Shown piece by piece: positions 1-28,200 of a stretch of DNA of 64,000 nt; the stretch's first letter is position 1, and each line of letters opens with the position of its first letter. Source of the stretch: Botryllus schlosseri. Lineage: Eukaryota. A model generated the notes under the pieces. The model saw only the letters and a program-made list of their open reading frames with translations, was not told the origin of the DNA and did not search any database. The translations under genes and the position numbers were made by a program. Location of the stretch: contig CM119378.1 in NCBI GenBank assembly GCA_051294905.1, positions 9,238,001-9,302,000 of the forward strand, in the 5' to 3' direction.

Positions 1-734
1 AGTCTAACCTTAGAATATTCATTGTTCGCACAAATGCAGAAAAACACTGGATTGGGAAAATTTTGCGAAAAAAAACACTAGAACACTAGGACGACCGAAA
101 AAACACTAGATCTAAAACACTAGGAGTGGCACCACTGATTAGGAGCGTGAAACGAATAGAGACTGTCTTTGACACATATAACACCCCGCTTGTGACGTGA
201 CAATTTCCCAATTCATCGGCAATGCCATGATTGGTTTGGTTCCGTTGTCATGGCCACGTGTGGTTATTTATCAGCTATGAAGCAATTTGAGCGCGTTCAA
301 GTCGCATATGCTTAGCCTACATACCTCGGTTAAAAAATTTATGATAAATTTCCAAAAAGATTCGCGGCACACCTGAGAATATTTGGAGGCACACTAATGT
401 GCCGCGGCACATACTTTGGAATCACTTGTCTGGTAAAGAACCACTGTTCTATGGCAAAGTCATCATATGTATCACATGATGGACGGACCCTGCGTGGGGT
501 GTAGCGATACAAATCCTTTGTGCATGCTGCATCGTCCGTATACGTCCGTTTCCGGGTTTTGACGGTCCGTAAGAGCGTAGTTGTGACTGCTTTTCAACAC
601 CACTCACTCCCACTTACTTCAAAACCACTTACTTACCTGAGTAATCTGTTTGACTTACTTTGACCACCCGTGAACACTCGTAGAAGCTTCGACGTGAAAG
701 CGAATGCAGAGTTGCAAAACGTTCACTATAGGCA

Positions 735-1843
735 CAGAGGTCTTAAACTCAAATATGCTCGCGGGCCAATTTCCTATATTTTTGATGGCTTCGCGGGCCG
801 CAGCAGGGGTATTTAATATATTACCAAGTAGGCCTTATTGAACGGGACTTTGCAGACTGGCATACCATAAACATCGTGGGCATGTGATTTGCTATTGTGA
901 ATTCAAGCCTGGCACAAAAAAATCACATTTTTAAATGTTTAAATTTAGATTCTGTGGTATACTTAGCATAGGTTGTCAAAATAATTAGTTATAGACACCT
1001 TGCTAGTGTACAAATGCATCATGACATGCATGCATCGGAGTTAGATTTACCTTCGAATATCGGAACTGATCAATAACAATTTGAATATAATGAATGATAA
1101 ATGTACCATAGTAATAAAACAGTCCAATCGCCGAGGAATCCATTATTGTTACGGCGGTGAATCGTACCATTACCTCACTCGCAACCTTTAATTGGCTATA
1201 ATAACATGGATAAACAGACCCAAGATGGCGCAGGATGTAACTAACTATACATCAAGGGGACATCGGAATGCCAACGATTTCTATTGTCATTTCGACCTGC
1301 TTGGATAGCTAAATACACTACGCTACGCAACGCAAGCTACGACCTTTTGATATATCATTATTCTCCGTAACAGAGTATGATAGTTTGTTTAGTTCGTGGT
1401 CGTACCAAGTCACGGCGTTCTGAGTCACAAGTCATTTTCTGACTGTAAAGTTTGACCCGACTCAAGTCGAGTCATTTTTATTTTATCACCCATTCAGTCT
1501 GAGTTCGAGTAATTCTACGGAAGGTCGCGTCCAAGTTCAAATCACAATTTTCAGTCACGAATCATCAACGGGTGATGTTTTACCATCATAAACAGGTAAT
1601 ATATGTCGTGATAGCTGATCCCCCCACGGTAACTTTTTAAAGTGATGTGATAATGAAATTTGATGAGTAGTTTCAGGGCTTTGGAGTAGTTTTAAAGCGA
1701 ATTTTAAGATCTCAAAGCTACAAAAAATATATGTAGCAGTTAAATATTGTTGAATACTTCAAAATCCAAAATGACGACACGGGCCGCACAAAATGATCTC
1801 GCGAGCCGCATGCGGCCCGTGGGCCGCGTGTTTGAGACCTCTG
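735..1843. mobile_element. hAT-like non-autonomous element or composite of MITE ends
   Basis: Termini CAGAGGTCTTAAAC and GTTTGAGACCTCTG with GCGGGCCG subterminal motifs; no TSD found. Confidence 0.45.
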
Positions 1844-2234
1844 CAGCACATGTAGAAAGACCTCATTAAGTAGCTGAGGACCGTAAGTACAACAACTGCT
1901 GCAGAGACGTCATTGAAGAGTCTTGCCGCCCAGCGCAATTTAGCATAACGAGACATCGCTAATATAACCATCATATAGGAGACAGTTTTGTAAGCGCTTG
2001 CTTCCCAACGGAATTAGCCGGTATAATAGGTTTAACTCAGTATTGCGTGAATTAGAAAGTGGACTCTTCTGTTTGTTGTTCGGACAATTCTCCGTTTAAT
2101 TAGAACACGCGCAATTTCTATCGGGAGCTTCTATGGTGACACTATAACGTTCCATGCAGTAAGAGATGACAATGAACTCGAAATCCTAATAAGTCCGTGC
2201 CCACTTTATAGTCGCTTTCACCATTCGGTACAAC

Positions 2235-3557
2235 CAGGACCGTAACTGACGCACCCCAAAACCCCCAATTGGGGGGGCGAGCTCGAAGGGGCCCAAAATT
2301 AATTCGTGAATTAGCATAAATTATAGAGTATTTTTTGAAAATTTATGCAACATTTAAAAAACTTTTCGCGCTAGGCGCGATTTCTAGGTGCCAAATATCA
2401 TGATTCTTTTGTACTCTTCCCCCAAGAAAAGAACACGAAAGATTTTTAGAAATTGACACATCGGCGTTGGCCAATACCGTGACACGACGCACCAAGACAT
2501 ATAACGATTTAGGACATATTACATGCGACTCCAAGAAGTGTGCCAGAACGATCGGCAGCATAAACACCTTGGCCGAAAAGGACTGCCGTTACGCTTACCG
2601 AAAACTTCGTTATGTATACAAAATACATATAGCTTTAATTGTCCATAGCCTAGGCGCCTAAATGACTGGCGCCGAATGTTCCTGCCTTGGCAATCTGAAC
2701 CTCAGAAGAGGAATTCCATCCCGCGGGGAAAAATTATACGCCAGTGGAGAAAAACCAATTTGAAATCGTGTGCGTCTTTTACTTTAGTACATTTGCCCGA
2801 TTCTATTTTCTTTGATATAGCCACGAAATAACATCATGTAACGAAGTCATACCAACTGGTCCGCCCGCCGAAGATGTTTAATTATTATTTACGAGCCCTA
2901 CAGTTTCCAAATCACCTCACTCAGCTCTACCGGTAAATCAGATAAAGTGAGCAGAGAGGACAAGAAATTGATAGCAATATATATGCAATTCCCGATCTTA
3001 TTGACCGATTTTATCATTAATTATCGAAAATTTTAGCGCTAGGCGCTGGCTCACTAAACAGTACGGCTGATTTCGTGGCAAAAGCGATCAACAAGATGGG
3101 ATGGGGGGTCGATTACCGGGGTCGGTTTATCACCCTATGGGAGCCCAAGACCCAAATTTTTTTGGGACCTGACGAAGTGCTGTTTCGTTCCTGCCAACAG
3201 GTATACGCCCGAAGATGTTTAATTATTATTGAGGGGTCCTGCCTATCTCACTCAGCTCTACCGGTAAATCTGAATACGTGAGCAGATTGGGGATAACAAT
3301 TGATAGCAATATATATGCAATCCCCGATGATACTGACCGATTCAATCATGAATTCTTGAAATTTTTCGCGCTTCTAGCGTCTAGGCGAGAATGGGAGGCC
3401 CACTAAACGGACACCCAACATTGATGACAAGTAGCCCCAATGAGCGGGTAGACAAGGGGGTCTGGGGGGCAAAGCCCCCAGAAGTCCGGTTTATAACCCT
3501 ATAGGGGGCCCAAGACCAACGTTTTGGGGGGGCTGACGTAGTGCTGTTACGGCCCTG
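2235..3557. mobile_element. Non-autonomous hAT-type element with internal direct repeats
   Basis: TIR CAGG(A/G)CCGTAAC, exact 8-bp TSD GGTACAAC; inverted relative at about 36595-37650. Confidence 0.85.
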
Positions 3558-3880
3558 GGTACAACGTCCATCTCATGTACAACAGAATGGTTTAACTCGC
3601 ACTGTGTCGGGGTGCAGGCTACTTTGGTTTGATTCTCACTGATTTGCGGTGTACCTTCGTCAAAGCGGAAATTCCGTTCCAACTCTTGCTACATGGTTTA
3701 GTACTTAAATTAAAGAACTGCACTACTATTTTATGGGTAGGTGTGCGCGCTAGTGAGTATCCCAGTACATATGGAATCGTTTGGTATCGAAATACTGTAC
3801 AGCACAACTATGAAGGTTTAACTCTTGTGCGCTTTATGCGATTACCGCCAATTACTGCAGTATTGCGCGGCTGCAAACCA

Positions 3881-3886
3881 TTTATT
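3881..3886 (-). promoter_or_regulatory. Candidate poly(A) signal AATAAA of the protease gene
   Basis: First AATAAA found on the minus strand, about 160 nt after the stop codon. Confidence 0.45.
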
Positions 3887-4043
3887 AGGCAATAGTACAG
3901 CATAGTATAGCATAGCATTGTCTGACTTTACGCATGGACGGAATTAAATTGTCCTAGTCGACTGTATATAAGGAAAGAACGTCACTATTCGGAATACAAA
4001 ATCATAGCATGAACAACAGCAACCTAACTTAATAGAATGCTTT

Positions 4044-4229
4044 TTATGGTTTGGCACATGATTCATGTCTTGCAATGATGCGATATATCCAATCGTTGAA
4101 ACTTTGAACGCGGGTAAACACGCCGGGAACCGTGGTTTTACAAAACGCGTCGCCCCAGCCAGCTATCCCTGCGAGATAGAAAAGTCCGTCATCTTGCCTC
4201 TTGCAAATCAGTGGTCCTCCGGAGTCTCC
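4044..4229 (-). CDS. Protease gene last exon: catalytic Ser (GDSGGPLIC...GWG...PGVFTRV), stop TAA
   Basis: Acceptor aatttacag|GGA GAC TCC GGA GGA CCA, phase 0; ORF track 4044..4331. Confidence 0.95.
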   Translation of the reverse strand, partial: GDSGGPLICKRQDDGLFYLAGIAGWGDAFCKTTVPGVFTRVQSFNDWIYRIIARHESCAKP

Positions 4230-7200
4230 CTGTAAATTTATAAGGGACATCAGTTTTCGCAGTAGGCAAATGCAATCAGTCAGTAGGATGATTCTATAGA
4301 TTACCGTAGCCATTTCCCAAATATCAGGCAATTATTGCACAATGCACATGCACATAAAATCAAGCATATCACCACAGGTAAACGGTGAAATGCTTCTTGA
4401 GCCGCAGTGTTTCCTAACCTTTTTCTAGTACGGACCCATACAATTTTGGGGGTAGTTGCGTGGACACTTTAACCGCTAAATTTAGGAAACTGAATAATAA
4501 ATAGAAATTCATCAGTTCCGCCCAGCCGTAATCGCCGCTTCATATCGCCATCTGGTCTGGTTGTTGCCTAAAAAGCTACCTGATAAGAAATATCATCACT
4601 TTCTCTTGTCACCGGCGGTGAGCGCAAAAAGTAAAGTAAAATATGGACTCCAAAATCAGGACAGGTGTATAGTGGAGGACAATGTAGTTTCGAAGTTGTA
4701 GTTTCAGCATTAGCCTTTCATGGAACCATAAAACTATTATATGAACTCCCAAGAGGTCTGTAGACCCTGGATTAAGTATCCCTAGTTTATCGCGAAATGG
4801 GATCATCAATTGCATCTGCATTCTAACAGGTTTTCGCAAAATGAACTCAACACCGGTTTCGTTTGCGATTCTGAAAATTTATTCTGCGCGAAAATCTGAC
4901 TGAAACGATTAGTACTTTGGATGATTGTGACTGCATGGTGTTGTACCCTTCGATAGAACTCAATACGATCGGTTCCTAGGCTTTTATTAACATAAAAGTA
5001 AGCTAGTGTATCTGAATACAACATAGCAATAATACAGAGTTAACGTAGGTACAACTAACAGAAGCGACGCCACACCCAACTAGTACGAATGAAATGAATA
5101 GTCCCGACGTGAAGGTAATCAGGAGCAATCAGTATAAACACCCACTAGTGGTCAAAAGGGACTGATACACCACAATCTCCCCCACTAACAAAAGCAAAGT
5201 AATTATTTAGAGGATTGTCCATATCGTTCAGGCGCGCGTTTAATTCTAGTTGATCTTCTCAAGGGCGGAGGATCAGCGACAACTTCTTGCAGAGTTTCTG
5301 ACGAATCTTCTTTGTTGCTAACTTCAACCGTAGGTTCAACCAGAGACGAATCGTCGGCCACTGCACGGTCCGGTTCGGCAGCCCCATCATCGACAGGATA
5401 GGGCTCAGTAGTAGGCGGATAAGGTGCGAGGTCCTTGACTGAGACGGTCGATTCCACTCCAGATGGATGCCGGATCAAGGCATATTTGGAGTTAGCTTCG
5501 AGCAAATCGACTTCGATTCCGAGCGGATCACTTTTGCATCTCCTTGCGAAGTTCCTCAGCAGCACGGAGCCTCCTTGGAGTATCCAATCTGGAACTGATT
5601 CCCCCATCATACTTCTCCTACTGAAATTGAAAAATCTGTCGTGCGGACACGAATTAGTAGAAGTACACAGAAGCGAACGGATAGAGTGAAGGGCATCGGG
5701 CAACACAGCTTCCCATGAACTTTCAGGCAATTTTCGTGAGGCTAAGAGCATTTTTACTGATCTCCAAAGTGTTTGATTCAAACGCTCACATTGGGAGTTT
5801 CCAGTGGGATGATACGGAGTAGTTTTGCTCGTTGCTATGCCTTTACGGGTAAGAAACGTTGTTACTTCCTTCGATAAGAACGAGTTTGAACGATCGCTGT
5901 GAACATATTCGGGCAGACCGAACAAAGAAAACAAATCAGTGAGACAATTAACAACGGTAGCAGAAGTCATGTCTCGGCATGGATACGCAAATGGAAATCT
6001 GCTATATTCGTCAATAATTACGAGCAGATACTTTCGAGGTCCTTCAACAGGGCCTTTGAAATCAATACTTATTCTCTCCCACGGTCTTGTCGATTTGACG
6101 AGACGGTGATGGACATTGGATTTATAGAATCGCGGTTTGATTTCTGAGCATATTCTGCAGTTAGCGCAGATCTTTCTGACTTCATCTACAGAGAAAGGCA
6201 AGTTTTTCGCTCTCATAAAATGGTTCAACCGCCGTACTCCGGGATGAGCAAGAGCTTCGTGCACCTGACGAAGAGACAAGCCAGAATTTGGCAACGAGCA
6301 ACAGACACGAGAAAATGTATCCGGAACAACATTCTCAGTACCCGGGCGATGAATTATTTCATACTTGAAGGCGCTCAATTCGAGTTTCCACACCGACAAC
6401 TTGGCATTTTTGATTTTACTAGCGTGAGTTTTGCTGAATATGAACGACAACGCTTTTTGATCGGTAACGAGGCGGAACTTATTGCGGTGAAGCAAGTATC
6501 CCCATTTTCGTATGGCCTCAATAATAGCGAGGGCCTCTTTTTCAACAATATTGTATTTTGACTCGCATTTGGAAAGAGTATGCGACATAAACGATACAGG
6601 TCTGCCTCTTTGACTTAGTATGGCCGCGATAGCCACGTCCGAAGCATCACAGGCAACCTCGAAAGGTTCGTCGTCATATATACAACTTAGGCAAGCACCT
6701 ATAAGGCTATTTTTCAACGATTTGATAGCCTGGAGTTCATCGGTTTTTAACGGAAATTCATTGTTTCGAGTCAATGGTTTCACTTTCTCTGAAAACGAAG
6801 GTATCCATTTCGAATAATAGGCAAACATACCCAAGCAGCGCTTTAAACTTTTTGCATTGTTAGGGATGGGCATATCCATCAAAGGTTTCAAATGGCAAGG
6901 ATCAGGCTGAATTTTGTTATGGGAAATAAGGTACCCCAGGAGCGATAACTTTTCAACAGAGAACGCACATTTCTTTTCATTCAGAGTCAGCCCGTCAGCC
7001 TTGGCAGAGGTCATAAAACGTTCCAACCTCTTATCGTGTTCTTTTCTATTTTTGCCATAAATAGTAACATTGTCCAGGTAAGCAACAGTACCTTGCAGGT
7101 TATGATTTTGGATAAAATTGTCTATGAATCGCTGGAAAGCTGCGACGCCGTTTGTTATCCCAAAAGGCAGTCGACGAAATTGGTATAAATTACCGTCAGC

Positions 7201-10200: not shown

Positions 10201-13200
10201 AATTTCGACCAAGCCTCAAAGGGGAGCTGCGCTATAAATATGACGTGGTCTCGAATTGAAGTTGAAAGTGTGAAAAGAATTTTGGCTTTCTAAGAAATCC
10301 ACCGTATTCGAACTGCAGCTATAACTTGTTCACGAATGGTCCTATTGTACTTCGTATATCTCTGTGGCATCGATGTCACGTGAAATCGCTACTTAACCCT
10401 CTGCGTACTGCGCGCTTATTTACTGCCACTACTCCGCCGTGGTTCACAAGACACAGCTCCATCATATTATCGACTGAAAACAATATCTATCCCTGTTCGA
10501 TCGCCTCGAAAACGTGAAACATAAAGTACTGCGTGCCACAAATTTTGCAAAGGGTTAAAAGTTAATCAGACCGCATCATATTTAGAGCACAGTACCTTTT
10601 TAATATCACGGCCTCATTGCCGGTGAGGATCTTTTTTATTCACCATCTTTCGAAATGCTACTAGAAATTTGACTATATTTAATTATCGTTGTATGTCATC
10701 GGCAACCCTCTATACCTCAACTTCTCGCGGTACCTCGGTTGTGAAACACTGTTTTAGCCTATCACTATATTCATACCTTGCACCAATTTTCCCCAGATCC
10801 TCCGGCGCAAATGTATGAATCGTGTATCTCAAATGACGACCAGAACGTAGCTTTACACACCGAGTTGGAAATGATTGGCATTTCAGCTTGTCTGAGGTAG
10901 CGCTCCCGGCCTTGTTCTGTCGAGATACCACCAATGTGAATAATGTTTGAACCGGCACATATGCATACCAGCTATCAACACTTACTATTTGCTACCCTCC
11001 GCCCCCATCCGGTGGTAACGCACGGGTGGCCTTCCGCGAATGGTTCTTGATTGTCGCCTAATATGCACGCCAACTGAACAGCGGGAGTCTGTTTTGCAGG
11101 ATACCTGAATGAAATTCAAAATCAAGAATTTTAACCGCTGTGCGGACCCGAGATCTCTATCTGGCTATATCTCATATTGCGGCCGAAGAAGACTCGGCGC
11201 CCTTCGTACATCACATGGACGTCGGAGAGGAACTAAGTGTATTACGAAATTATTTGCTAGCCAGCAAGTTCGTGAGGGATGCAAACGGCTAATTCGTATT
11301 CGTTGTTAGTGCCGTAGAGTTTATGTGGCAACGTTTTTGGTTTGTATTATTCAAGTTGTATCGACCACACTATATCATTTCACATCAGGCCAATATTCTT
11401 TATTATGATTCCCTATCTGCCGACTTGTAGCATGGCCAGCTTGACACCGCTGGCGGGATAGCTTGTAGTGGTATAATCCACAACTGCATCACCAACAGAG
11501 TACTGGTTCGAGTTGGGGTGTGTCTCCGCTGTAACTAGGATAACATGTCTGGGTTATGTCCGGGTGTGCTTGAACTGCGTTGTGACTAGGATATCATACC
11601 CGTACGTGTTGCCCTTATGTAAACGCAGTCAAAATGCACCTCAGACATACTCAAGACATGATGTCTGAATGACAACGCAGTCCCAACATACACTAGACTT
11701 ACCACAGACATGATGTCCGGGTAGAAATTCAGTCCAAACACGCGTTAGACATACCCCAGACATGATGCCTGAGTAACTACACAGTCCCAACACACTCCAG
11801 ACATAGCCAGACATGATATCCCGGTGGAAACGCAGTTCAAACACAAATTACACATACCCCAGATATGATGTCCGACTGACAAAGCAGTCCGAGCACACTT
11901 CTGTTCAGACATAACCCAGACATGATGTCCAAGTTACAGCGCAATTCCAACACACCTCGGACATGGTGAATTTTACAGTAAAAACACCGTCCGATGACAC
12001 TTTCAGACATATCCCAGACATGATGTTCAACTGACATAGCAGATCGAATATACTTCAAACATATCCCAGACATGATGTCCGAGGGACAACGCAGTATGGA
12101 CACACTTCAGACATGCCGCATACATGATGTTCGAGTGATAACGTAGTCCGAACACACTCCAGACATACACCAGTAATGATGTCCGGGTATAGAGTCGGTG
12201 AAACATGTCATTGCAGAGCCGTGGGCCTATACCATAGGTTCCTTCATAGAAGTTTGACGTTGGAGTTTACTGTATGGCTATCCAGCATTGGGCCATTCCC
12301 TAGATTCCTCTAGATCAGTGGCTCTCGAACTGGGGGTGGCGGGAAAGCACCTGAGGGGGACGCGAAGCCGCCCAAGAAAAAATATGTTCCTTGAACTGAG
12401 AGAGTTTAGATTGTACTGAAGCTTTCAAGTTCAACAACGGCAATATTTTTAATTATATTACGAATTTAAATTTCATAATTGCGTCGTATCATACATACAC
12501 CGATGTTAGATTTTGACAGTCACCGGATCTTGATGCATTTATGATCGGTCTGCATGTCTGCCGAGCATCTGTGCAGAGTGCGTAGAAAGGCACAAAGTTA
12601 TGAATGAATATGATATTTGCTTATATAAGGTCATGTCATATGCCATGTATAATAGCCTATCTCTTCCGAATTTAAGATACAAGGTTGAAGGTCAAAATGG
12701 CTTACAAGCTACAGTCGCAATATTCACTCCGAGTACACTTGATTAGGGTACATTTTGTAGAATGCCACTCGTAAGAAGCACATTTTATGGCTGTTCAAAA
12801 GTACTCAATTGAATTAATCTCTCGTCGAACACCTGCGATTCATTGAGCCAAATTGTTTTCCCCGTGAAGCTAATCTCAAGTGAGTAAGAGATGGGATTAG
12901 ACACCAAAATCTCAAAAATATCTGTAAGCTAAGTGCTACCATTGCACATGATTATTTTTGACAAAATATTCAACTGATATTTTTCCCGCTCGGCGCGATT
13001 TACCTGTTTCTCTGTGTATCGTTCGAATTTTATATTTCACAACGGTCATAAAGCTTACATGCCATCAAACTAGGCGCTGGAATTGCAAACATTCTGGCTG
13101 TTGTTTCTAATGTTTTTGATATTACGATAATGGAGGACGCTAAATTTTCATTATCATCAATGGGGGGGGGGGTGTCTAAAAAAGTTTGAGAGCCACTGCT

Positions 13201-16200: not shown

Positions 16201-19200
16201 AGAACTGGAACTACTCAAAAAACCGTTAGTTAGATGACCATCAACTAACTAAATCAGTAGTTTTTAGAAGTCTGCCTGAGTAGCTTTACTGTTAGTCTTA
16301 CAGATTACAACACGTATGGTATGCACACATGTGGGAGACTTTTGCTTTGTGACTCACTGGAAATTAGGGGTTACCCGAAGGCTTGTAGATTAGCGTAGGA
16401 TAAACTGGGCATTTTAAGGCCCACGGACCAAATACGGACTACGTGAGAAGTGCGGAGAAAATTTTGAAGAAAAATAAAAGCTGTCCCAAAAGACCCTACT
16501 TCTTGGTGATTAGCGAAATAATTTGGATTCACCTTCGAGCTTTATCCATTTTAAAAACTGTTGTTTCACTTTTTACAAGAAACATGATTATAAAGATGCA
16601 CATCAAATCATTCAGCTTGTCATGAAAAATGATATTATGTGCCACTTTTGGCACGCCTTCCAGGGGTAGCCGATCTCTGGCGTATTCTACATTCATAATA
16701 AAGTCCATATGACAATATAGCATGGGTATATTCAAGTTGGGATTATGACTTGAGCACGCATTCATTCGGCTGAAGCTGCGAGAAGGCTAATTCGGAAAAC
16801 CTGCCAGCGAAATTACTAAAACAACGGGACGATTTTACCAATAAGCTACACACCGCTCGGGATAGTGACCAATCTGTTACATCCCATACATTTAGGTGTC
16901 TTCTAGAAGGACGTGTCTATGGGTTGGTATGATTAAAAAGAGTTGACCCAGTTTCTTGTTTCTCGTTTTGAATAATTATGTGGAATAAATATTATATTAG
17001 TACTTTGACTCTAAATTCCTAATTGCCTAAAACGCTAAAAGTAACACCCCCCCCCTCCACAAGCTTGTGTTAACCGCGTAATTCATTTTATTCAATTTAA
17101 AAATTATTAGAAATAGATACATCGCCGAATATAATGTAAACTTTTGACTTGACTAGCCAACGTATTTCCTGCCTGTCATTCTCAGAAAATAGTTGTCCGT
17201 CTGTGACGTAGGGGTTCCCAAGTCATTGAAGGTTTAGAACCGTACAGAACTGGATTTCATTCTCCTAGCCAACACATTAATTTCTATTTTAACAGAAATA
17301 TCTGACGTTGAATCGATATTTGAAAAGAACGGGGTTTCGAGTTTGAAATGGGAGAGATTCCTACCCAAAAAAGTCACCTGCTGGCAACGCCACTGTTAGC
17401 AGTGATGGCTCTGAGCGAGCAATGCCAGCACAAACATTATTCAACAGAACACCGGCATCTCAATTCGCCCAAGACAACGACACGTGTTTTCTGGTTGTTC
17501 GGCCACTAATATTTTTTTCAAATGTGCAACTATAACTATAACTAGAACTACTGATTTTTCAAAATCTGTAACTACAACTAGAACTAAAACTACTCATTTT
17601 TCAAAACCCGCAACTAACTAGAACTAGAACTACTCAATTTTTAAAATCAGCAATTAGAACTAGAGCTACCAAAAAATCGTTAGTTAGTTGACCATCAACG
17701 AACTAAATGCTTAGTTTGTACAAGTTTGATTCATGGTGTTTTTCGACTATACTATTGTCATTTACACCAGGCCGATATTCTTCCTTTTTATTCCGTAACT
17801 GCCGATTGATAGCAGGGCCCACTTCTAGGCTTTTAGCAAGACCCCGCGTACGCGGAGGAGGTTGCGAGGAGGAGCCCGAAAAACAAATTGCCACGTAAGA
17901 TTGCTTTGCAATTTCTTGTGGTTAAGCCATAGGATTCCCAGCTCTTCTCGTCTCGTGGACCCCTTCGGAAGATATTTGAGCCAAAATTAATAATAAATAG
18001 TACGCCTTTAAGCCGTCCTGCAGCGTGATCTTCGGGTCTCCGTTACGGGCATGTTTTAAACGAATGTAATAAACTGCGTACCTCAGCTTGATAAGAGCAA
18101 TGTCGTTATGATTGTACTTTGCAACTTGAAAGTTGTTCCGCAGGAAGATTGCGTCGACTAACCTCTCCTGCTCCGTACCCTCGTCGTCAAAGAGGTCATA
18201 GTCTCCCAACACGACATCGTGTAGGTCTCCGCTGAAACCACAAAGCTATTAGGTTCTCAACCGCCGGTCCGTGGCAAATTTCCTACTGGTCCGCCAAATA
18301 TATTATAATTTAATATCTCAAATCCAAAATGCAAGAAGTTGGATGCTTTTACATTAATTATAGAAATAAAATATAAACTTGGACATTGATTCAGAAGTTT
18401 GGAACGCATGTTTTGCAAGGTGTCGCATTATAGATAGCTCTTACGTCAAAATGGTACAAGTGTTGTACGAAACTGTTTCAAAATAGCCTACAAAAGTTAT
18501 ATGTGAAAGCTACGGAGACTTGTAAAAGAACTTCGTCAAATTCCGACAGTGCAAGTAAGCGACACTTGGTAGCATAATAAAGGCTATAGCCAAGAGCAAA
18601 GCCGCATTTCTTTCAAACGATTGCGAACAATCAAAATCAAATTATTGATCTTTAACAGGGTTTCGCGAAGTTCGCCTTCCAGAAACTTCAATCCAACCAC
18701 ATATAAATATATAATATGAAAATGCAGAAGTAACTGAAGTTTCCAATATTACATTTGAGTTGCATACATATATTGTATTTATTGTACATTTTGTTTTTTG
18801 AAGGTTAACCTGTCCGCAACATATGTTTTGAAGCTTCATTGGTCAAAAAGGTGTAGACTAGCCAATGATCTAGTGAGTGTTTCTAAAAATTATTTCCGGT
18901 CAGGAGCCACTAATTGTTTTTTATGCTTCATTGCGTACCACGTGGCCCCTGGATAACTTATGTTAGTCTTGTTGTAGGCCTTATAGTATAGTAGTAACAC
19001 CATTAAATCGCATGAAAACACTATTTTATGCGGAAGATGCAATTGTTTCTTCTGTGCTAGCTTGTTTATCCGGAGCATACTGCATTACTGACTGCACAAA
19101 AGAGATCTTGTCCAGCTGACTTTGACGATTTCAGCTCTTGGACTTCATGGCCATCGAAGCCGAGATCCCTCGGGCACACTCTCATCTCAAGGCAGGGATT

Positions 19201-22200
19201 TTGAAATTAATTTCATTCTGCGCTGTTCGAATTAGGTTACTGTTAGACAGCCTGGGCTTTATGTCCGTCCGTGTTCGAAAGTGTTTTCGCACAAACCACA
19301 CCAGGCAAACATTATCCTGCGTAATCGATAGCGATGAATCGATACTTCGTGTATTATGGATTATACGCTCCTTTCCCTTTCGACATGGTAGAAATTAATC
19401 ATGCTTAGTACACTGATGAATTAGTCTATTAGCCGAGTAGCCTGGTTAGCCAATCTCACCAGTCACTTGGCTTTCTCGGAAACGAATTTGATGTGACGCC
19501 ATAATACCGACGTGACATAGTTGCACGGATGAAGTGGTACTTTAATTGTGAGTTTACAGTGTTTAAGCTGTTGCAAAGAACAGCAAATTGTAGACAAATT
19601 ACAAATAAAAATTGTTTAAGCTCTCGCATGCCACTAGCGGTGGGCGTATCACATTCTGATAACCACCGATCAGGTGCCGGGATTCTACTACTCTTCCGAA
19701 TACAGCAGAAGCAGGTTAATTCAATGTACAAGAACATCATCGGTTTCCAATGATATCGATACTTACAGGTATGGGCAATGGGCTGCTGTTATCACCCAGT
19801 ATCGATCGATAAGTGTTCCTCCACAAAAGAAGTGAGCTGCGGGATTAGCGCTGGAGTCGGTGATGTAATATGCTACCTAAAATAAATGCCGCAATAGTAG
19901 TTGTCGACTAACGGCAAAACCTGGCCCCATTCATAAAATAGAAGGTAAAAGATGGCTCAAAGTCAATGTGCTATTGTTTGATTGTACTAAACGTACGGTT
20001 GCGCAAATCGGGTCACCGGATTTCTGGGTTGAAACGTATTATTTGATAGCGCTGATATTTTCATTAATATATATTAATTGGCTGAACAATATTTAACCCT
20101 AACTCATCTCAACGTGTAAAAACATACGGGCCGACCTCGGTTCGACAATTGCAAACTCCGTCTGGGCTTCTATTCGACCTACAAGTAACGCCATCAGTTT
20201 GAATTCAATATCATATTGTTTGTGGGGTGCTCTATCCACGATAGTCGATATGCTATTGCCTCGTATAGTGAGGAAATGTCAGCATAAGCAATTCAGTGTA
20301 CCTGCCACGGATAGTTTCGAGGACTGGCCCGCGCTCCCCCGATTATTTTCTTGGTAGATCTTTTCCTCCTGCTTTGCGACGTCCTTAAATGTCAAGTCAA
20401 ATTTCTTGACAAACGACTCATTTGTACAGGTAACGAATTTACTGCAACTCGAATCCCATCGGGTATTAGTGAAAAATACAGCACAAGCTATGGATATATC
20501 AAATGCGGCTGTTACATTCCGATAAAGTTGATCGAGTGATTCAATGCAAAGCCGTAGATAAGTGGAAGTACGCAGCATCGGAATTACTAATGCTTACAAT
20601 GATAACGTGACCAGTTCAGATGACGTCACAAACGTCGGAGTCTCAATGTTTTCCCCTCGTAAGCCACTAAACACAATGATTTACTTGATTAGACAGGATT
20701 TCGTTAGATATCACAATCCTCCGCGGCGCAAATTGCAAAGTTCTCTATAGTTTAATATAGGACTTATATTTCTCGTCATAATGTATTTTTATGCAAAAAC
20801 ATCTAACCGTTTATTTCCTCGCATCATCTCCCAGTCTCTAGCGGAGACTTTGTGAGCTTTCCCGTGCGACTTCACGACGAGCTTCTTTACTTCCAGAAAT
20901 TCGTAATCTCGCGATGACAAGTGTTCCTTTTTCATACTTTTGACTTTCCCGTGAAGCTTCAGAATGTCTATCATTTCTTCATCATGATATCCATCGTTGA
21001 AGTCCCCGGCGCTTCTTCTCTTCCGAGCTGAGTTGGTGACCACACTTCCCTGGTAATTCGTAGTATTAGGCGTCATGGAAGGACGGCTAACGAACCTAGG
21101 ATGCTTTAGGTTTAGCCATACCGTTTGGTTGAGTGGTAAATTCAACGCTTCCGTCCAAGAGTTGTTGGGATGTTTAGGGGATTGTCCTCTTACCTATATG
21201 TGATTCATAGAAAGAAATCAGGGCGCTTCTTCGATATACCACGAGATCAAACATTTCAAAGTTTATGAATGGAAAAATTAATTGTTTTTCGTGTTGGGAT
21301 TGGAATGGGATTAGAGTTGTGGGTTCTGGATGTTAGGGTTGGAAGTGGGTTAGGGTTATGGTTTTGGTTAGGGTATATCAATAGTAGGGTTGTGGGAAGG
21401 GATATCATGGTTGTGAGTGTGAGATATTGGAGTTGGGGGTTGCGGACGTTAATCCGGGGATTTTATCACCCCTGACCCTAAATCCCTCACGCCCAACCCT
21501 AATATACGTCCTTCACACATTCCTAATATCTGTCATCCCCGAACCCTAATATCTCTCACCAACAACCCTGATATTGGGATACCCTAACCTCAACCCTAAC
21601 CCACTCCCAACCCTAATATTCCGTACCCAACACGAAAAGACAATTTATTTTCCCGTTTATTTAATTTTGATATGTTTGATCTCGGGGGTATATCGAAGAA
21701 GCGCTGAAATCGGTTGATTCACCAAAGTAGTCTTGTACCCTGAAGATCCACGGCTAGATATTTGGTGTATTTATCTGATTCCCACGATAGTGTAGGGTGT
21801 AAATCAGGTAAACGGCACTTTCCGGTACCATACACTTTTGGCGAAAAGAGTGTGTATTGACACCTAAGGGGCCAAAAAGGTGTTACGCGAAGACAGAACA
21901 TAACTCAGAATTATATCGCGGTTATAAACTGTACATGCCTACGTGCATACCTTCCTACGTTCCTATTTAAATGCACGAATTGGATTAAAATATCTTACTC
22001 GATTTGTACCGCGGTATAAGTCTGAGATAGCTTCAGGTGTCGTGTGCCATGGGTATATATATTCACACCCATATATCAGAAGTATTAGACTGGCTGAAAT
22101 ACATATCAGTGTACTGCTGTGCTCTTACATCCATTAGAATGGGGTGAGAACCGGTCAAATACACATATCGTTATGGAGATACATATGCCAGGGTGTGGTG

Positions 22201-25200
22201 GATCCTCTTTGCGTGTGTGTCAGGGATATATCCCCATGAGAATAGGTCTATTTGACTCATTTGACTCATTTTCATCCTATGGATGGGTGGGGAATAGCAA
22301 TTTGTTAGCCATTTACGTGATTTACGCCCTACGCTAGGAGGAAATACTCGATTTCCTTTCATAGTGTATGTTTTATGATACTGACCTCGGGCTTGTCAGA
22401 TTCATCAAGAATGGTTTCGTGATCGTCCGTCAGTTTCGGTATAACTGGTGCAGCAGAAGGCATACCACACACAGGCTTTGCTCCTGTAGTACAATAGATT
22501 CACTTGTTGAATTTTGTGATTAAAATATATATCAAGGGCACATTTGATACTCAATTACAATCAAAAGTAGTGCTATAAATTCTTACTCAATTACAAGTAG
22601 CAGTAGCGATCTTCTAGAACAGTGGTTCCCAACCTGGGGCGTGAAAGCATCTGAAGGGGGCGCGAAGAAGTAGTCAACTGAATTTTTTTCGCGCTCTGCG
22701 CGATTTACATCAAATTCACGCGTATTTCTCTATATAGACCGAATTTCATATTTTTGAATTCTCTTATCAAAAGTCATAACTTTCCATGCCATCAAACAAT
22801 ATGTTGGGGTTGCTAGCATCCCGGTAGGATTTTGTGATATGACGATAAGGGGGCGCGAAACTTTTCACTATCACAAAGGGGGGGGATGTCTAAAAAAAGG
22901 TTGGGAATCACTGTTCTAGAATCTAGGTATTCCGAGACTACTGAGGTAGAAGTAGTAAACGAAAGCTAGAAGTACTCCAATCAGTAGATTGAAGAAATAG
23001 ATCGCCGTAGGGCTGTAAATTTCCACGGCATTCCATTACAAGAAGAAGTACTGAATTTCAAAGCATGCCGAGATAATCCAAGTCTAGAACTCAGCGACGA
23101 TATAGGTACTAGAAGTATTCGTGTAAGTAGTTTGACGAATCAAATTAGGACGGGACGTCGATCCGTTTTTTTCTTTCAAGGAAATCGTCGGTGATTGCCT
23201 TCAAAATTGCAAGATGCCTCTTCGGTACTAGGAATGGTCATTTGGTCAACCCGTTGCCCGCGAGAAGGTTTTGAGTGGCTACGCGCTAATTTTTAAAATT
23301 AGTTAAATTAGCAAAAAATGAATTGCCCAGTAAATTTATTGTGAATTTGCAGGATCAAGAAAAACTCTTATTAGCCGGAGCGCGAAATTTGGGACGTCCA
23401 GGATTAATGAAGCCTCATTTTCTACGCATTGGCGTAGTCACATTTTTGTAAATCTTTGTAAATAAAAATAAGGTAGCATATTCCGCGGCAGATTGATTCA
23501 ACTTGATTTTGTTCGCTGTTCTTGTGATTACGTGCCTTTAGATTTCTTGCTTACAACAATCCTTACACGGCCGCTGTCACCGTTATCGTCTCGGCAATTC
23601 GACTCTGTATGAAGGTATGCAAATCAATAGGAGAGTTGGTAACAGTGTGCCGATTTCAATGTTAGCAGGACGAGATCGCCAGAGATGAAATATGTACTGA
23701 CCAGATGCGTTGGAATCGCAAAACGATTCGTCGCTGTCGTCCCCACAATCATCATATCCATTGCAGCGCTGCGTATTGGATATGCAGTAGTTGTTGCCAC
23801 ATCAAAATTTGGACGGCCAGCAGCAAGGATCGCAAGCTCCGTCCGTCAATCGTATGTCGTCGATGGCGATGTCTCCCAAATAATCCAACCCTATAGTGCC
23901 TTTTATGATGACCTGTTGTGAAGATGCCGGAAAGTAGAGATGGTGTGAACGTACATGGGGTTCACGTTCCCGTTCGGTGTGTGAACCGCTGTAATTTGGA
24001 GGTTCACAAACGGACCTTGGTATAGCGTCCATACTGTGAAACTTTTTCAAGTAATACAATTTTCATGATAACGTCTTCGGTTGAAATTCTTTGCATTTCA
24101 ACTTTGGAACACCCTCTGCATGGCGCTGGCAGCACGAAAATAAATTCAGCACTAAACGAGCTTGCACCTTGGTAATTTCAAAAATTATTTGCTTGTAAGT
24201 TTGCTCAAAATATTCAGATTTCCGTTTGTGAATCTTTAGTGACTCTCAGCTGTGAGCTTTGCCCGCAATCACATAATAGCAAGAACGAAACACACTACAT
24301 GTAGGAAGCCAGTGAATTGTGCTAGTCAACCAATCAGTTATTTACGTCAACGAAATTGATCTCTAAATGCATCGTTGTCTGGTGTAAAAAATCTATCAGA
24401 CGTACGGGATCTATCTTGATTTGAGATCCTCGTTGTATTTTAAAGAACAAGCCCGTACGGTTTAGTTGTTGGCTATTGTATAACTTGTTTTTGAGATAAT
24501 ATCTGGCGCAAGTGTGTAGAAACCAGTGTTTCACTCGAATACATATGTCCGGTCTAGCCGAGTCCTCGTCGATATTGTCGGCAAAGCGATTTTGTGGAAT
24601 AACTATAGAATTAGATTGTTCCAATTGATACATTGTTGAATAAATCTATAACAAACAACTAACGAAATAGTTTTGGGCCCCTTGGAGCTATCCCGCCCTA
24701 TTGGAGGTTTGGGGTGCGACATGCATTTACGGCACAGGGTGATAGTATAACTCTTGTGTACTTTCGCTGCTCCAGTCACGTCGCGAAACCCAATGATCCA
24801 ATCCTCGCATCCACTGTGTGATTGTGAGTTTAGTTCCACTATTGTGGGGAATAACATAACCATTCTGGGCCCGCTTCAAATAATTCTTTGGTGAATGGGA
24901 TACTATACAGAGAAGTGGAGAAATAATTTTTTTTATGCTAGCAGTACATTGTGCATTGTACATATAGTCGATCGGCCTATGTCTTGTACCTAATAGGCGA
25001 TGTCAGAACATTAAATCCAATAATACAACGTAATCAGCGGGGAAGCGAGTGGCGCAGTTGGTTAAGCGCCAGCGTCACGACACCAATGGTGATGGTTCGA
25101 ATCCCGGTTCGGACTAATTACTATGGGTCGGAGGTTCTATGGGCTCCTCATCGCTGACCTCACTGCTAAGCAGTGACTTGAAAAGCCCAGCTACAGTGAG

Positions 25201-28200
25201 CCGAGCTATAATTCGGTAGCAACAGAAACGATGTTCAACTGATGAAGCGTGTCTGACAGAGACTGAGAGAGTGCAAGAAGAATGAAAATGTGCAGCGATG
25301 ATAAACGATGATAAAGCGAGCGTGAGAGAGAGTGGAAGCACGTCAAAGACACCAAAATATGAAATTTATTGTACGTGTAATTGCAATGTCGTGGAGCACA
25401 AAGCCTTAACCTGGCTAAAAGCACCACTGTCGTGTCCTATAATAATAATAATAATAATAACAACGAAATCATGTTACTCTTACATTATGTAAAATGACTT
25501 CAACGCCGGGCATTGTTAAACCGACTACAAAGATTATTGTGCTGCGCTAAATCCTCAAATCCATCACGATTCGTTGCGGCGGAGCCGTATACTTCCACAG
25601 GAAGTTCACAAATGACAATAAATCGCTATTGTGGATAATTTTATGTTACATCTCCATCAAATGCGCTGCAGTCCAAGTTTGATACACACCCTTTTCCAAG
25701 GCATACAACATATGACACTACGGGAATACTCGATTTATTCAGCATTAACTTCCAGATTCGAAATTAGTTTCGTTGCTGTTGACCGTATAGGTTGTCATAG
25801 CGGGGGACAAAAGCCGCCGTTTCCGGGGTTGTAATCAAGTCACAAGGTTCCGAGTCACAAGTCAATCTCACTTAATGTTTTGACTCGAGTTAAGTCGAGT
25901 CATTTTCAATTCACCACCGAGTCAAGTCCATAGGAAGATGCCGAAACTACCAGGAGTGGTCTTTGAGATCAGGAATGATAGATGAAATACCAATGGTAAC
26001 ATTACTATTCTTCGAAGTTACAATGAAATGTCTGTCTTGGCAGTCCTAGCCTCGAGTCGTATGACTTGGTTCATGACTCGAGTCGAGTCAAGTCATTGTA
26101 CGCATTTGAAAAAATGACTCGAGTCAAGTCGAGTCCCAAAATATTCGCGAATCGAATCATTTTACATTTTTCCAAATAGCTCTGTGGCCCGCCTCAAATT
26201 ACTGTTGTGGCCCACTCTTTGAGAACCACTGCTCTAGTCTATCTAGAATCAATAACATTTCACACTCTAAGATATATCTTAGCTTTGTAGTTTTATGTTC
26301 TTTCTTGCTTTTACCATGATGTGGCTATAATAATATAAAGTTACGGTCAAGGACATTTTTCAATGCTACTAAGATTACTGCAAAATTCTGCTATCTAACA
26401 ATAAAGAGCACAATGTAGAACCTTCCAAGGTTCGTTCGCAACCGGCATAATATGATCTGTCAAGCAATATTCTCAGAAATCGATGATATTTTCCACTATG
26501 CCAGATTTCATTTTGGGCATCTTATGTCTTTCCTGATTTTACCTTTATGAAGGTAGTGATAGTTACAATCAAAGACAATTCATCAACGTTGCGAATTTCA
26601 CTGTATAATTATGCTATTTCACAAAGTCCACGTACTGTAAGACAGGGGTTCTTAAGTTGGGTCCATGAATTATCTATAGCAGGGGTCATCAACACGAGAC
26701 TCGCGAGGTCATATTTTGCGGCCGTTGATCATTTTGAGATTTCAGTAGAACGACAAGAAAAGCATTTTTAAAGGCGGAAATTGGTTTCAGTTTCCAAATA
26801 TTGTTGTTGTTTCAGAATAAGCTTAGCTATTCCTCACTAGCTGAAACGGCTTCGGCGATGGCAACAGCATTCCATGGAGGGAAAATCAATCAGGCGATAT
26901 CAATGGACGTATTGCCTTGGCGTGCAATGGTCCAGATACTGCCAAGACTCGGATGCCTTAAAAACGGCTTGCGGTTCCGCACAAGATCAAGCTTTATAGG
27001 GAGATGTCGTTCAGGTATAGTACCGTGTCTTGCTAGCTCCAATATCGATCTCTGAAAAGCGCCGTCGGTTATCTTGCTTTTCTCATACTTCAAATTACAA
27101 TGAAATTCATGATCATGAATCATGATATATATTTGCTGTATTTGTATTTATTTAATAAGATATTACTTTGTGGTAACTATGCCCGTCGCTCATGTTGGAG
27201 AGCATAGCGTTGTACTGACGTAGTTTAAAAAATGTGGTTGCTAAACTGTGTGGCCTATTTTGTGAAAAGTGGCGAAGTGAAAGTGGTGAAAATAGTGGGA
27301 TGTTAAGTCAGTAACCGGCGAATGACGCTATAGTGAAAAAATGTGCAATGGTTAGGAGGCATCATATACTTCGGAACGCCATCAGGGATAGCAGACCTGT
27401 GATCTATACATATAGGTTACCAGGAGCCAGGGATGCTCAGGCTGCTCAGTGCTCACACATGAGTGCACTTTAGCAGCACGTGACTTACAAATGTCGATGC
27501 CAATGCGATACACACCAAACATGTCACGATGATCAGTGAAGTATAATTGTTACAATGTGTGAAGCTGATGAACTGAAGACGGCCATATCCGCTCTGGCTT
27601 AATCATGGTATCGTAGCTATCGAGTTAAGGTTCATTTCCCACCGGACACCGTCAATTGTGGTTGATATAGTCCGTTTCACATTCGTGTCATATTGTTGAG
27701 AACTGCATTACCATATACCAGGAGTATATTCGCGATAGACGTGGTGAGTAAAGACTGAAAGGGGAATATGGCCTCACATCAACCCGCCCAAGCAGGACTG
27801 GTGCACAAAGCCCTGTAGTAGCACCAAACTAACAGTGAACAGTCAATATGAACGCCCTTGTCTATTGTATATCAAAGATGTAAATGGTGGGTATATATTT
27901 AGGTACGTACATTGTAGCATGAATATTCAATGCATACCTTATACGGAAGTGCTTCATTGATAGTGATTTCCGTAAAAAGCCATTGATTTCCTTGGTTTTT
28001 AAAATTTGACCACAGTGACGAACCGATGTACTTCCCATTCTCATGTGGTGGCATGCTGTATACTTTGATTGTACCAACACCTTCCCCGAAAGAGTGGTAC
28101 CAAAACGTGAGACACTTTGCTGCAATATATACCTGCATCATTTCGAACGACACATGACGGATGAAAAGCGTACATCTGAAATCGTAGACATCGCGCGACC

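Follow-up and report, generated by a model that had tools for sequence, protein, structure and literature searches.

The window, by which we mean the whole 64 kb stretch of DNA that was analysed, contains a gene for a mosaic serine protease with one codon that seems out of place. On the minus strand, codon 23804..23802 is an in-frame TGA, situated at the x position of the F-x-C motif of an LDLa module. The question raised by this locus is whether the codon ends translation in a gene that has recently been disabled, whether it is recoded, or whether it is a mistake of the assembly or a sign of decay. We have addressed this using the structure of the gene, the sequences of other individuals, a tandem paralog and the signals that recoding is expected to require.

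An in-frame TGA within an LDLa module

Translation of the minus strand over window:23640-23900 gives ...GDIAIDDIRLTDGACDPCCWPSKF up to the TGA and CGNNYCISNTQRCNGYDDCGDDSDESFCDSNAS... beyond it, and the codon context on the coding strand of the exon is TTT TGA TGT. A preliminary description had given the surrounding codons as TCC AAA TTT TGA TGT GGC AAC. The letters are right and the strand has to be corrected, as they belong to the minus strand and are the reverse complement of 23793..23813.

The 33 residues that follow the TGA match Pfam Ldl_recept_a (PF00057) at profile positions 10-37 with E 5.3e-7 and 30.2 bits, so that the post-stop piece lies above the curated cut-off of 24.1 bits on its own. 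The uninterrupted module of the paralog discussed below matches positions 3-37 (E 8.6e-9, 35.9 bits). Since the paralog match begins at position 3 and that of the window at position 10, the TGA corresponds to profile position 9, the x of F-x-C. The module reads CWPSKF, stop, CGNNYCISNTQRCNGYDDCGDDSDESFC, and all six cysteines are present together with the acidic calcium-binding cluster DCGDDSDE (D-x-S-D-E). Translation, profile match and conserved residues thus confirm that a TGA interrupts an LDLa module that is otherwise intact.

An additional cysteine is found close by. At window 23821-23832 the sequence CDPCCW, described earlier as DPCCW, places an extra cysteine between the last of the MAM domain and the first of the LDLa module, and the paralog has kept it. 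This could be a candidate free cysteine for an intermolecular disulfide.

Structure of the gene

The end of the fifth MAM domain and the whole of the LDLa module are encoded by a 211 nt exon at 23702..23912, which corresponds to G000:C8:9261702-9261912 and is on the minus strand like all the exons that follow. This exon begins in phase 0, has one base left over at its end and is flanked by AG and GT. Splice joints connecting 27938 to 23912 and 23702 to 22483 are both present in spliced contigs of two public sequencing runs, X8 and X11. Thus the borders of the exon have experimental support, and the gene is transcribed. In-frame relief of the stop by skipping this exon was rejected, as 211 nt is not a multiple of three.

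The preceding exon, at 27938..28175 and ending in NQGNQWLFTEITINEALPYK, encodes MAM sequence (Pfam MAM, E 1.1e-10); its 3' end is set by the splice joint and its 5' end comes from the exon model only. Further upstream, from 28351 to 57189, the gene is described solely by a homology-guided exon model, based on tblastn with 150 relatives. Together the tblastn matches and the exon chain place five MAM domains between ~57.2 kb and 23.9 kb, the last of which is the one confirmed by Pfam. The upstream model over-extends several exons and was used solely to locate the five domains. An earlier exon chain was discarded, as it spliced around the stop and inserted micro-exons.

The exons downstream of the LDLa exon were derived by hand. 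Together with the LDLa exon and the final 180 nt of the MAM exon before it, they make up the joined frame described below. The first, at 22386..22483 (GAKPVCGMPS...), has its acceptor at 22483 in the spliced contigs and a GT donor, and holds the cysteine that had been called a tether cysteine. There follow two exons derived by hand from the sequence: a large, fast-evolving exon for the linker and activation peptide at 20808..21193, with an RKRR site, and an exon at 20302..20383, with RRKR...IIGG, where the protease domain starts. The remaining five are protease exons that match the Pfam Trypsin profile in order. The catalytic His (TAAHC) is encoded at 19767..19876 (profile 23-44, E 2.1e-7), and the catalytic Asp (DIALIKL) at 18082..18231 (profile 51-94). 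The exon at 10986..11104 (...CVTTGWG...) gives a weak match to positions 98-130 in a continuous frame, and that at 10777..10916, which ends in ICAGGSGENWCK, matches 135-176. The last exon, at 4044..4229, contributes the catalytic Ser (GDSGGP) and closes the frame with the natural TAA (profile 178-220, E 3.5e-12).

From 28117 to the TAA at 4044 the joined frame comprises 553 codons, and the TGA is its single interruption. All ten exons of this frame have AG/GT borders. The S1 protease domain is complete, with its His/Asp/Ser triad and collinear coverage of profile positions 23-220 over five exons, which bears out the earlier statement that the protease downstream of the stop is intact. Upstream of the joined frame, comparison with the paralog found no stop in the homology-supported cores of exons whose borders are modelled.

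The protease has one unusual feature. Where 10777-10800 meets 4215-4229 the sequence reads ...GENWCK followed by GDSGGP, and the residue six before the catalytic Ser, the usual position of Asp189, is counted as Asn, in the paralog also. Because Asn occupies the Asp189 position, the cleavage specificity may not be trypsin-like.

Four short interspersed repeats lie in the introns, at window 23953-24635, 25040-25460, 22613-22920 and 21215-21705, and the genome contains thousands of candidate copies that are 76-92% identical. One of the four ends ~40 bp upstream of the acceptor of the LDLa exon; for the acceptor at 21193 the upstream distance to the end of a repeat, here a palindromic MITE-like one, is 22 bp. 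The element at 25850-26135 is of extremely high copy number, with a summed contig depth of up to ~285,000 in run X3, and many of its copies lack an internal stretch of ~241 nt. A Gypsy element sits in the intron between the exons at 10777 and 4229. It had been suggested that tolerance of this insertion fitted a null haplotype; the element being intronic, its tolerance needs no such haplotype and the link is unnecessary.

The codon in the sequenced animal

Contigs of four public runs (X3, X8, X11 and X17) were aligned to window:22340-28200. X3 consists of DNA contigs of sample S1, the sample that contains most of the window sequence; S1 is probably the source animal of the assembly. If X3 represents the long reads behind the assembly, it is not independent of it.

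Position 23804 of the plus strand is A in X3 as in the window, with 0 of a depth of 22.6 showing another letter, so that only TGA is seen. X3 is heterozygous at 23651-23705 and at 23953, where separate contigs of ~10 and 16 depth are found. The contig shared between these heterozygous sites carries the TGA, and both haplotypes therefore appear to have it; the sequenced animal apparently carries TGA on both chromosomes.

Could the animal truly be AGA at this codon, with the T a consensus error? All three other studies read AGA, the contigs of X3 contain single-base deletions of a kind typical of the technology, mostly in homopolymers, which marks the source data as prone to indels, and on the plus strand the change from T to A extends a run of three A to one of four. 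Against this, the TGA stands at the full depth of 22.6 with no alternative contig, while heterozygous sites only 100-150 bp away were resolved separately. Moreover, the errors visible in X3 are deletions, and four of the eight contigs listed equal the assembly at every base. Three more differ from it by one or two single-base gaps only. The contig at 27544-27977, with six substitutions and two gaps, is probably the other haplotype.

The deletions themselves have a clear pattern. Seven of eight fall where the same base occurs at least twice in succession, and for six of these the run has three or more (A6, A5, T4, G4, C4 and A3). One lies within the coding exon, where X3 at full depth is without a base of the GG pair at 23778; both G are present in the assembly and in the RNA contigs of the other runs. 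As most of the other X3 deletions sit in homopolymer runs, we read this gap as probably an artefact of deletion-prone reads, although two G make only a very short run. With TGA alone in the X3 DNA contigs, an assembly slip is unlikely, and so is a base-call error, which the preliminary description had listed together with a nonsense allele.

Other individuals have an arginine codon

In all contigs of X8, X11 and X17 the plus-strand base at 23804 is T, giving AGA on the coding strand. The support is 7.03/7.03 in X8, 73/73 in X11 (two contigs) and 5.45/5.45 in X17, and the three runs come from three independent studies. Contigs drop rare variants, and these counts are to be read accordingly: absence of TGA from the RNA runs, like absence of AGA from X3, is not proven by them.

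The contigs might in principle derive from the paralog. Over the 129-210 nt that they share with the window exon the codon base is the sole difference, and the nearest paralog-diagnostic sites lie 5 and 10 nt from it. The paralog differs at 21/211 positions of the exon, and with a single difference the X8, X11 and X17 contigs are therefore alleles of the window gene and not copies of the paralog. Comparing the codon between individuals was a check proposed at the outset, with a sense codon named there as an outcome that would count against recoding, and it shows that other members of the species have a sense codon in this very gene.

In a search of sequencing runs, the 16 outside sample S1 contain at most 0.38 of the sampled words, the value for both X8 and X11. 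By an estimate from word counts, as opposed to a direct reading of the codon, a full exon with TGA would contain ~0.46-0.49.

The preliminary description preferred a recent nonsense allele, and the AGA of the paralog and of the transcripts of other individuals supports this. It had also proposed a route, by a CpG transition from CGA to TGA, which fails, since the sense codon is AGA and the change is an A-to-T transversion.

A tandem paralog and the age of the stop

One other copy of the exon exists in the same assembly, ~60 kb away on the same strand (G000:C8:~9202195-9202460) and 89% identical over the exon. The whole gene has been duplicated in tandem, and the two copies are collinear. Where the window has TTT TGA TGT, the paralog has TTT AGA TGC, with Arg at the position of the stop. 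Third codon positions account for 14 of the 21 exon differences.

Compared over 552 aligned codons, the two genes have a dS of ~0.34. The ratio dN/dS is 0.09 in the MAM end and LDLa module, reaches 0.15 in the protease and rises to 0.57 in the linker and activation region. In the last of these the linker exon at 20808-21193 and its counterpart at G000:C8:~9200253-9200677 have a length difference of 13 codons, and the RKRR and RRKR sites are kept. Judged from these substitutions, the region 3' of the stop has been under purifying selection for nearly all of the time since duplication. The low ratios of 0.09-0.15, together with the intact frame, indicate that the stop is young relative to the duplication.

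In favour of an old, decaying pseudogene, with the tandem paralog as the only functional copy, are the stop codon, the origin by tandem duplication and the presence of several transposon insertions within introns. A copy in decay would hardly be expected to look like this one. There is no further stop or break of frame from the exon at 28117 to the natural stop and the splice sites are intact, dN/dS is 0.09-0.15 in the domain regions, and other individuals have spliced transcripts of exactly this copy with the sense codon. We regard decay as extremely improbable.

Within 33 nt (28014-28046) of the MAM exon that precedes the LDLa exon, seven listed sites separate the X8 transcript haplotype from the window. 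Five of the seven have the base of the paralog, and the flanking paralog-specific sites at 27947, 27956 and 28049 agree with the window. The pattern resembles a short tract of gene conversion or an old polymorphism common to both tandem copies.

Recoding of the UGA

In-frame UGA codons can be used deliberately. If this one were decoded as selenocysteine, or were subject to regulated readthrough, the gene would give both a MAM-only form, earlier put at ~1020 aa, and the full-length protease. The downstream frame is perfectly open, UGA is the leakiest stop codon, and the extra cysteine of CDPCCW is close by, all of which could be taken to favour recoding. The open frame is explained by the youth of the mutation, and the paralog and the other individuals have AGA, so that the stop is not conserved.

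Neither form of recoding finds its expected signals. A C after the stop favours readthrough, and the base here is U (UGA-U). With a stop that is not conserved in a context that does not favour readthrough, programmed readthrough is left without support. For selenocysteine, a SECIS element would be expected in the 3' UTR. Rfam gave no match of any kind at gathering score in the whole 64 kb window, and no SECIS at E<=10 in bases 1-4400, where the last exon and the 3' UTR lie. Nor is a UGA or Cys codon conserved at the site.

We also asked which residues occupy the x position in related proteins. A search of protein representatives with the paralog exon returned 150 multi-LDLa or multi-MAM mosaic proteins with at most 53% identity over the LDLa exon and no ortholog among them, and these relatives were used only for this residue spectrum and as tblastn guides. 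In their 1470 LDLa modules the x position is R in 323, Q in 285, K in 179 and T in 156, with no preference for Cys. The gene resembles those of eukaryotic selenoproteins only in its in-frame UGA followed by an open frame, and differs from them in the absence of a SECIS, the lack of conservation of the UGA and homologs without Cys at the position. Recoding of either kind is thus very unlikely indeed, and the corresponding proposals of the preliminary description are not sustained.

Two other ways of reading the codon were considered and rejected. The ascidian mitochondrial code, in which TGA encodes Trp, does not apply, since the gene is nuclear and spliced. RNA editing as the origin of the AGA is countered by the genomic AGA of the paralog; in addition, a U-to-A type of RNA editing is not known.

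Discussion

The observations above are best explained by a loss-of-function allele of recent origin, in which an Arg codon (AGA) has become a stop in one member of a tandem pair of MAM-LDLa-protease genes, and we are confident of this reading. Both genes code for a mosaic protein in which five MAM domains are followed by an LDLa module, a long linker and an S1 serine protease. The first base of the codon would have changed from A to T by transversion. In other individuals the same gene is expressed, with AGA, as correctly spliced transcripts. Under the standard code, translation of the TGA allele ends 456 residues early, with the loss of most of the LDLa module, the linker and the entire protease. 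With eight introns downstream of the stop, the transcript is a predicted target of nonsense-mediated decay. Alternatively, a shortened product with the five MAM domains might be made. The tandem paralog is intact and could make up for the loss. Against attributing the loss to the TGA alone, the upstream exon borders are modelled, and a second lesion there on this haplotype is conceivable.

The locus is like the segregating nonsense variants found in reference individuals: one premature stop interrupts a gene that is expressed, under constraint and otherwise intact, other individuals and the paralog have a sense codon, and a nearby duplicate may provide redundancy. It differs in that the carrier appears to be homozygous for the stop, with two distinct haplotypes in the flanking sequence, a hint that the mutation is not of very recent origin in its population. 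Conceivably it is common and homozygous in the source population, as a natural knock-out that is tolerated or even favoured, possibly with a functional secreted five-MAM product or low-level readthrough. We consider this unlikely. A young loss-of-function allele remains our preferred reading.

The encoded protein belongs in the company of enteropeptidase (TMPRSS15) and the invertebrate MAM/LDLa/trypsin proteins P0076 and P0099, combining MAM and LDLa modules with a C-terminal protease of trypsin fold. It shares with the enteropeptidase-type mosaic proteases the His-Asp-Ser triad and a basic cleavage site before IIGG. Its own arrangement is distinct, with five MAM domains, one LDLa module and a linker of ~170 residues; no CUB, SRCR or SEA modules were seen.

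The finding, though genuine, is an ordinary one: a loss-of-function allele in a polymorphic sea-squirt genome. For annotation it means that the locus should be described as a functional gene with a premature stop in the reference allele, and not as a selenoprotein gene, a readthrough gene or a pseudogene. It illustrates how many private loss-of-function alleles one reference animal may have when it comes from a marine invertebrate species with high polymorphism. A tandem pair of which one member has a natural null allele could also serve as a small natural experiment on redundancy.
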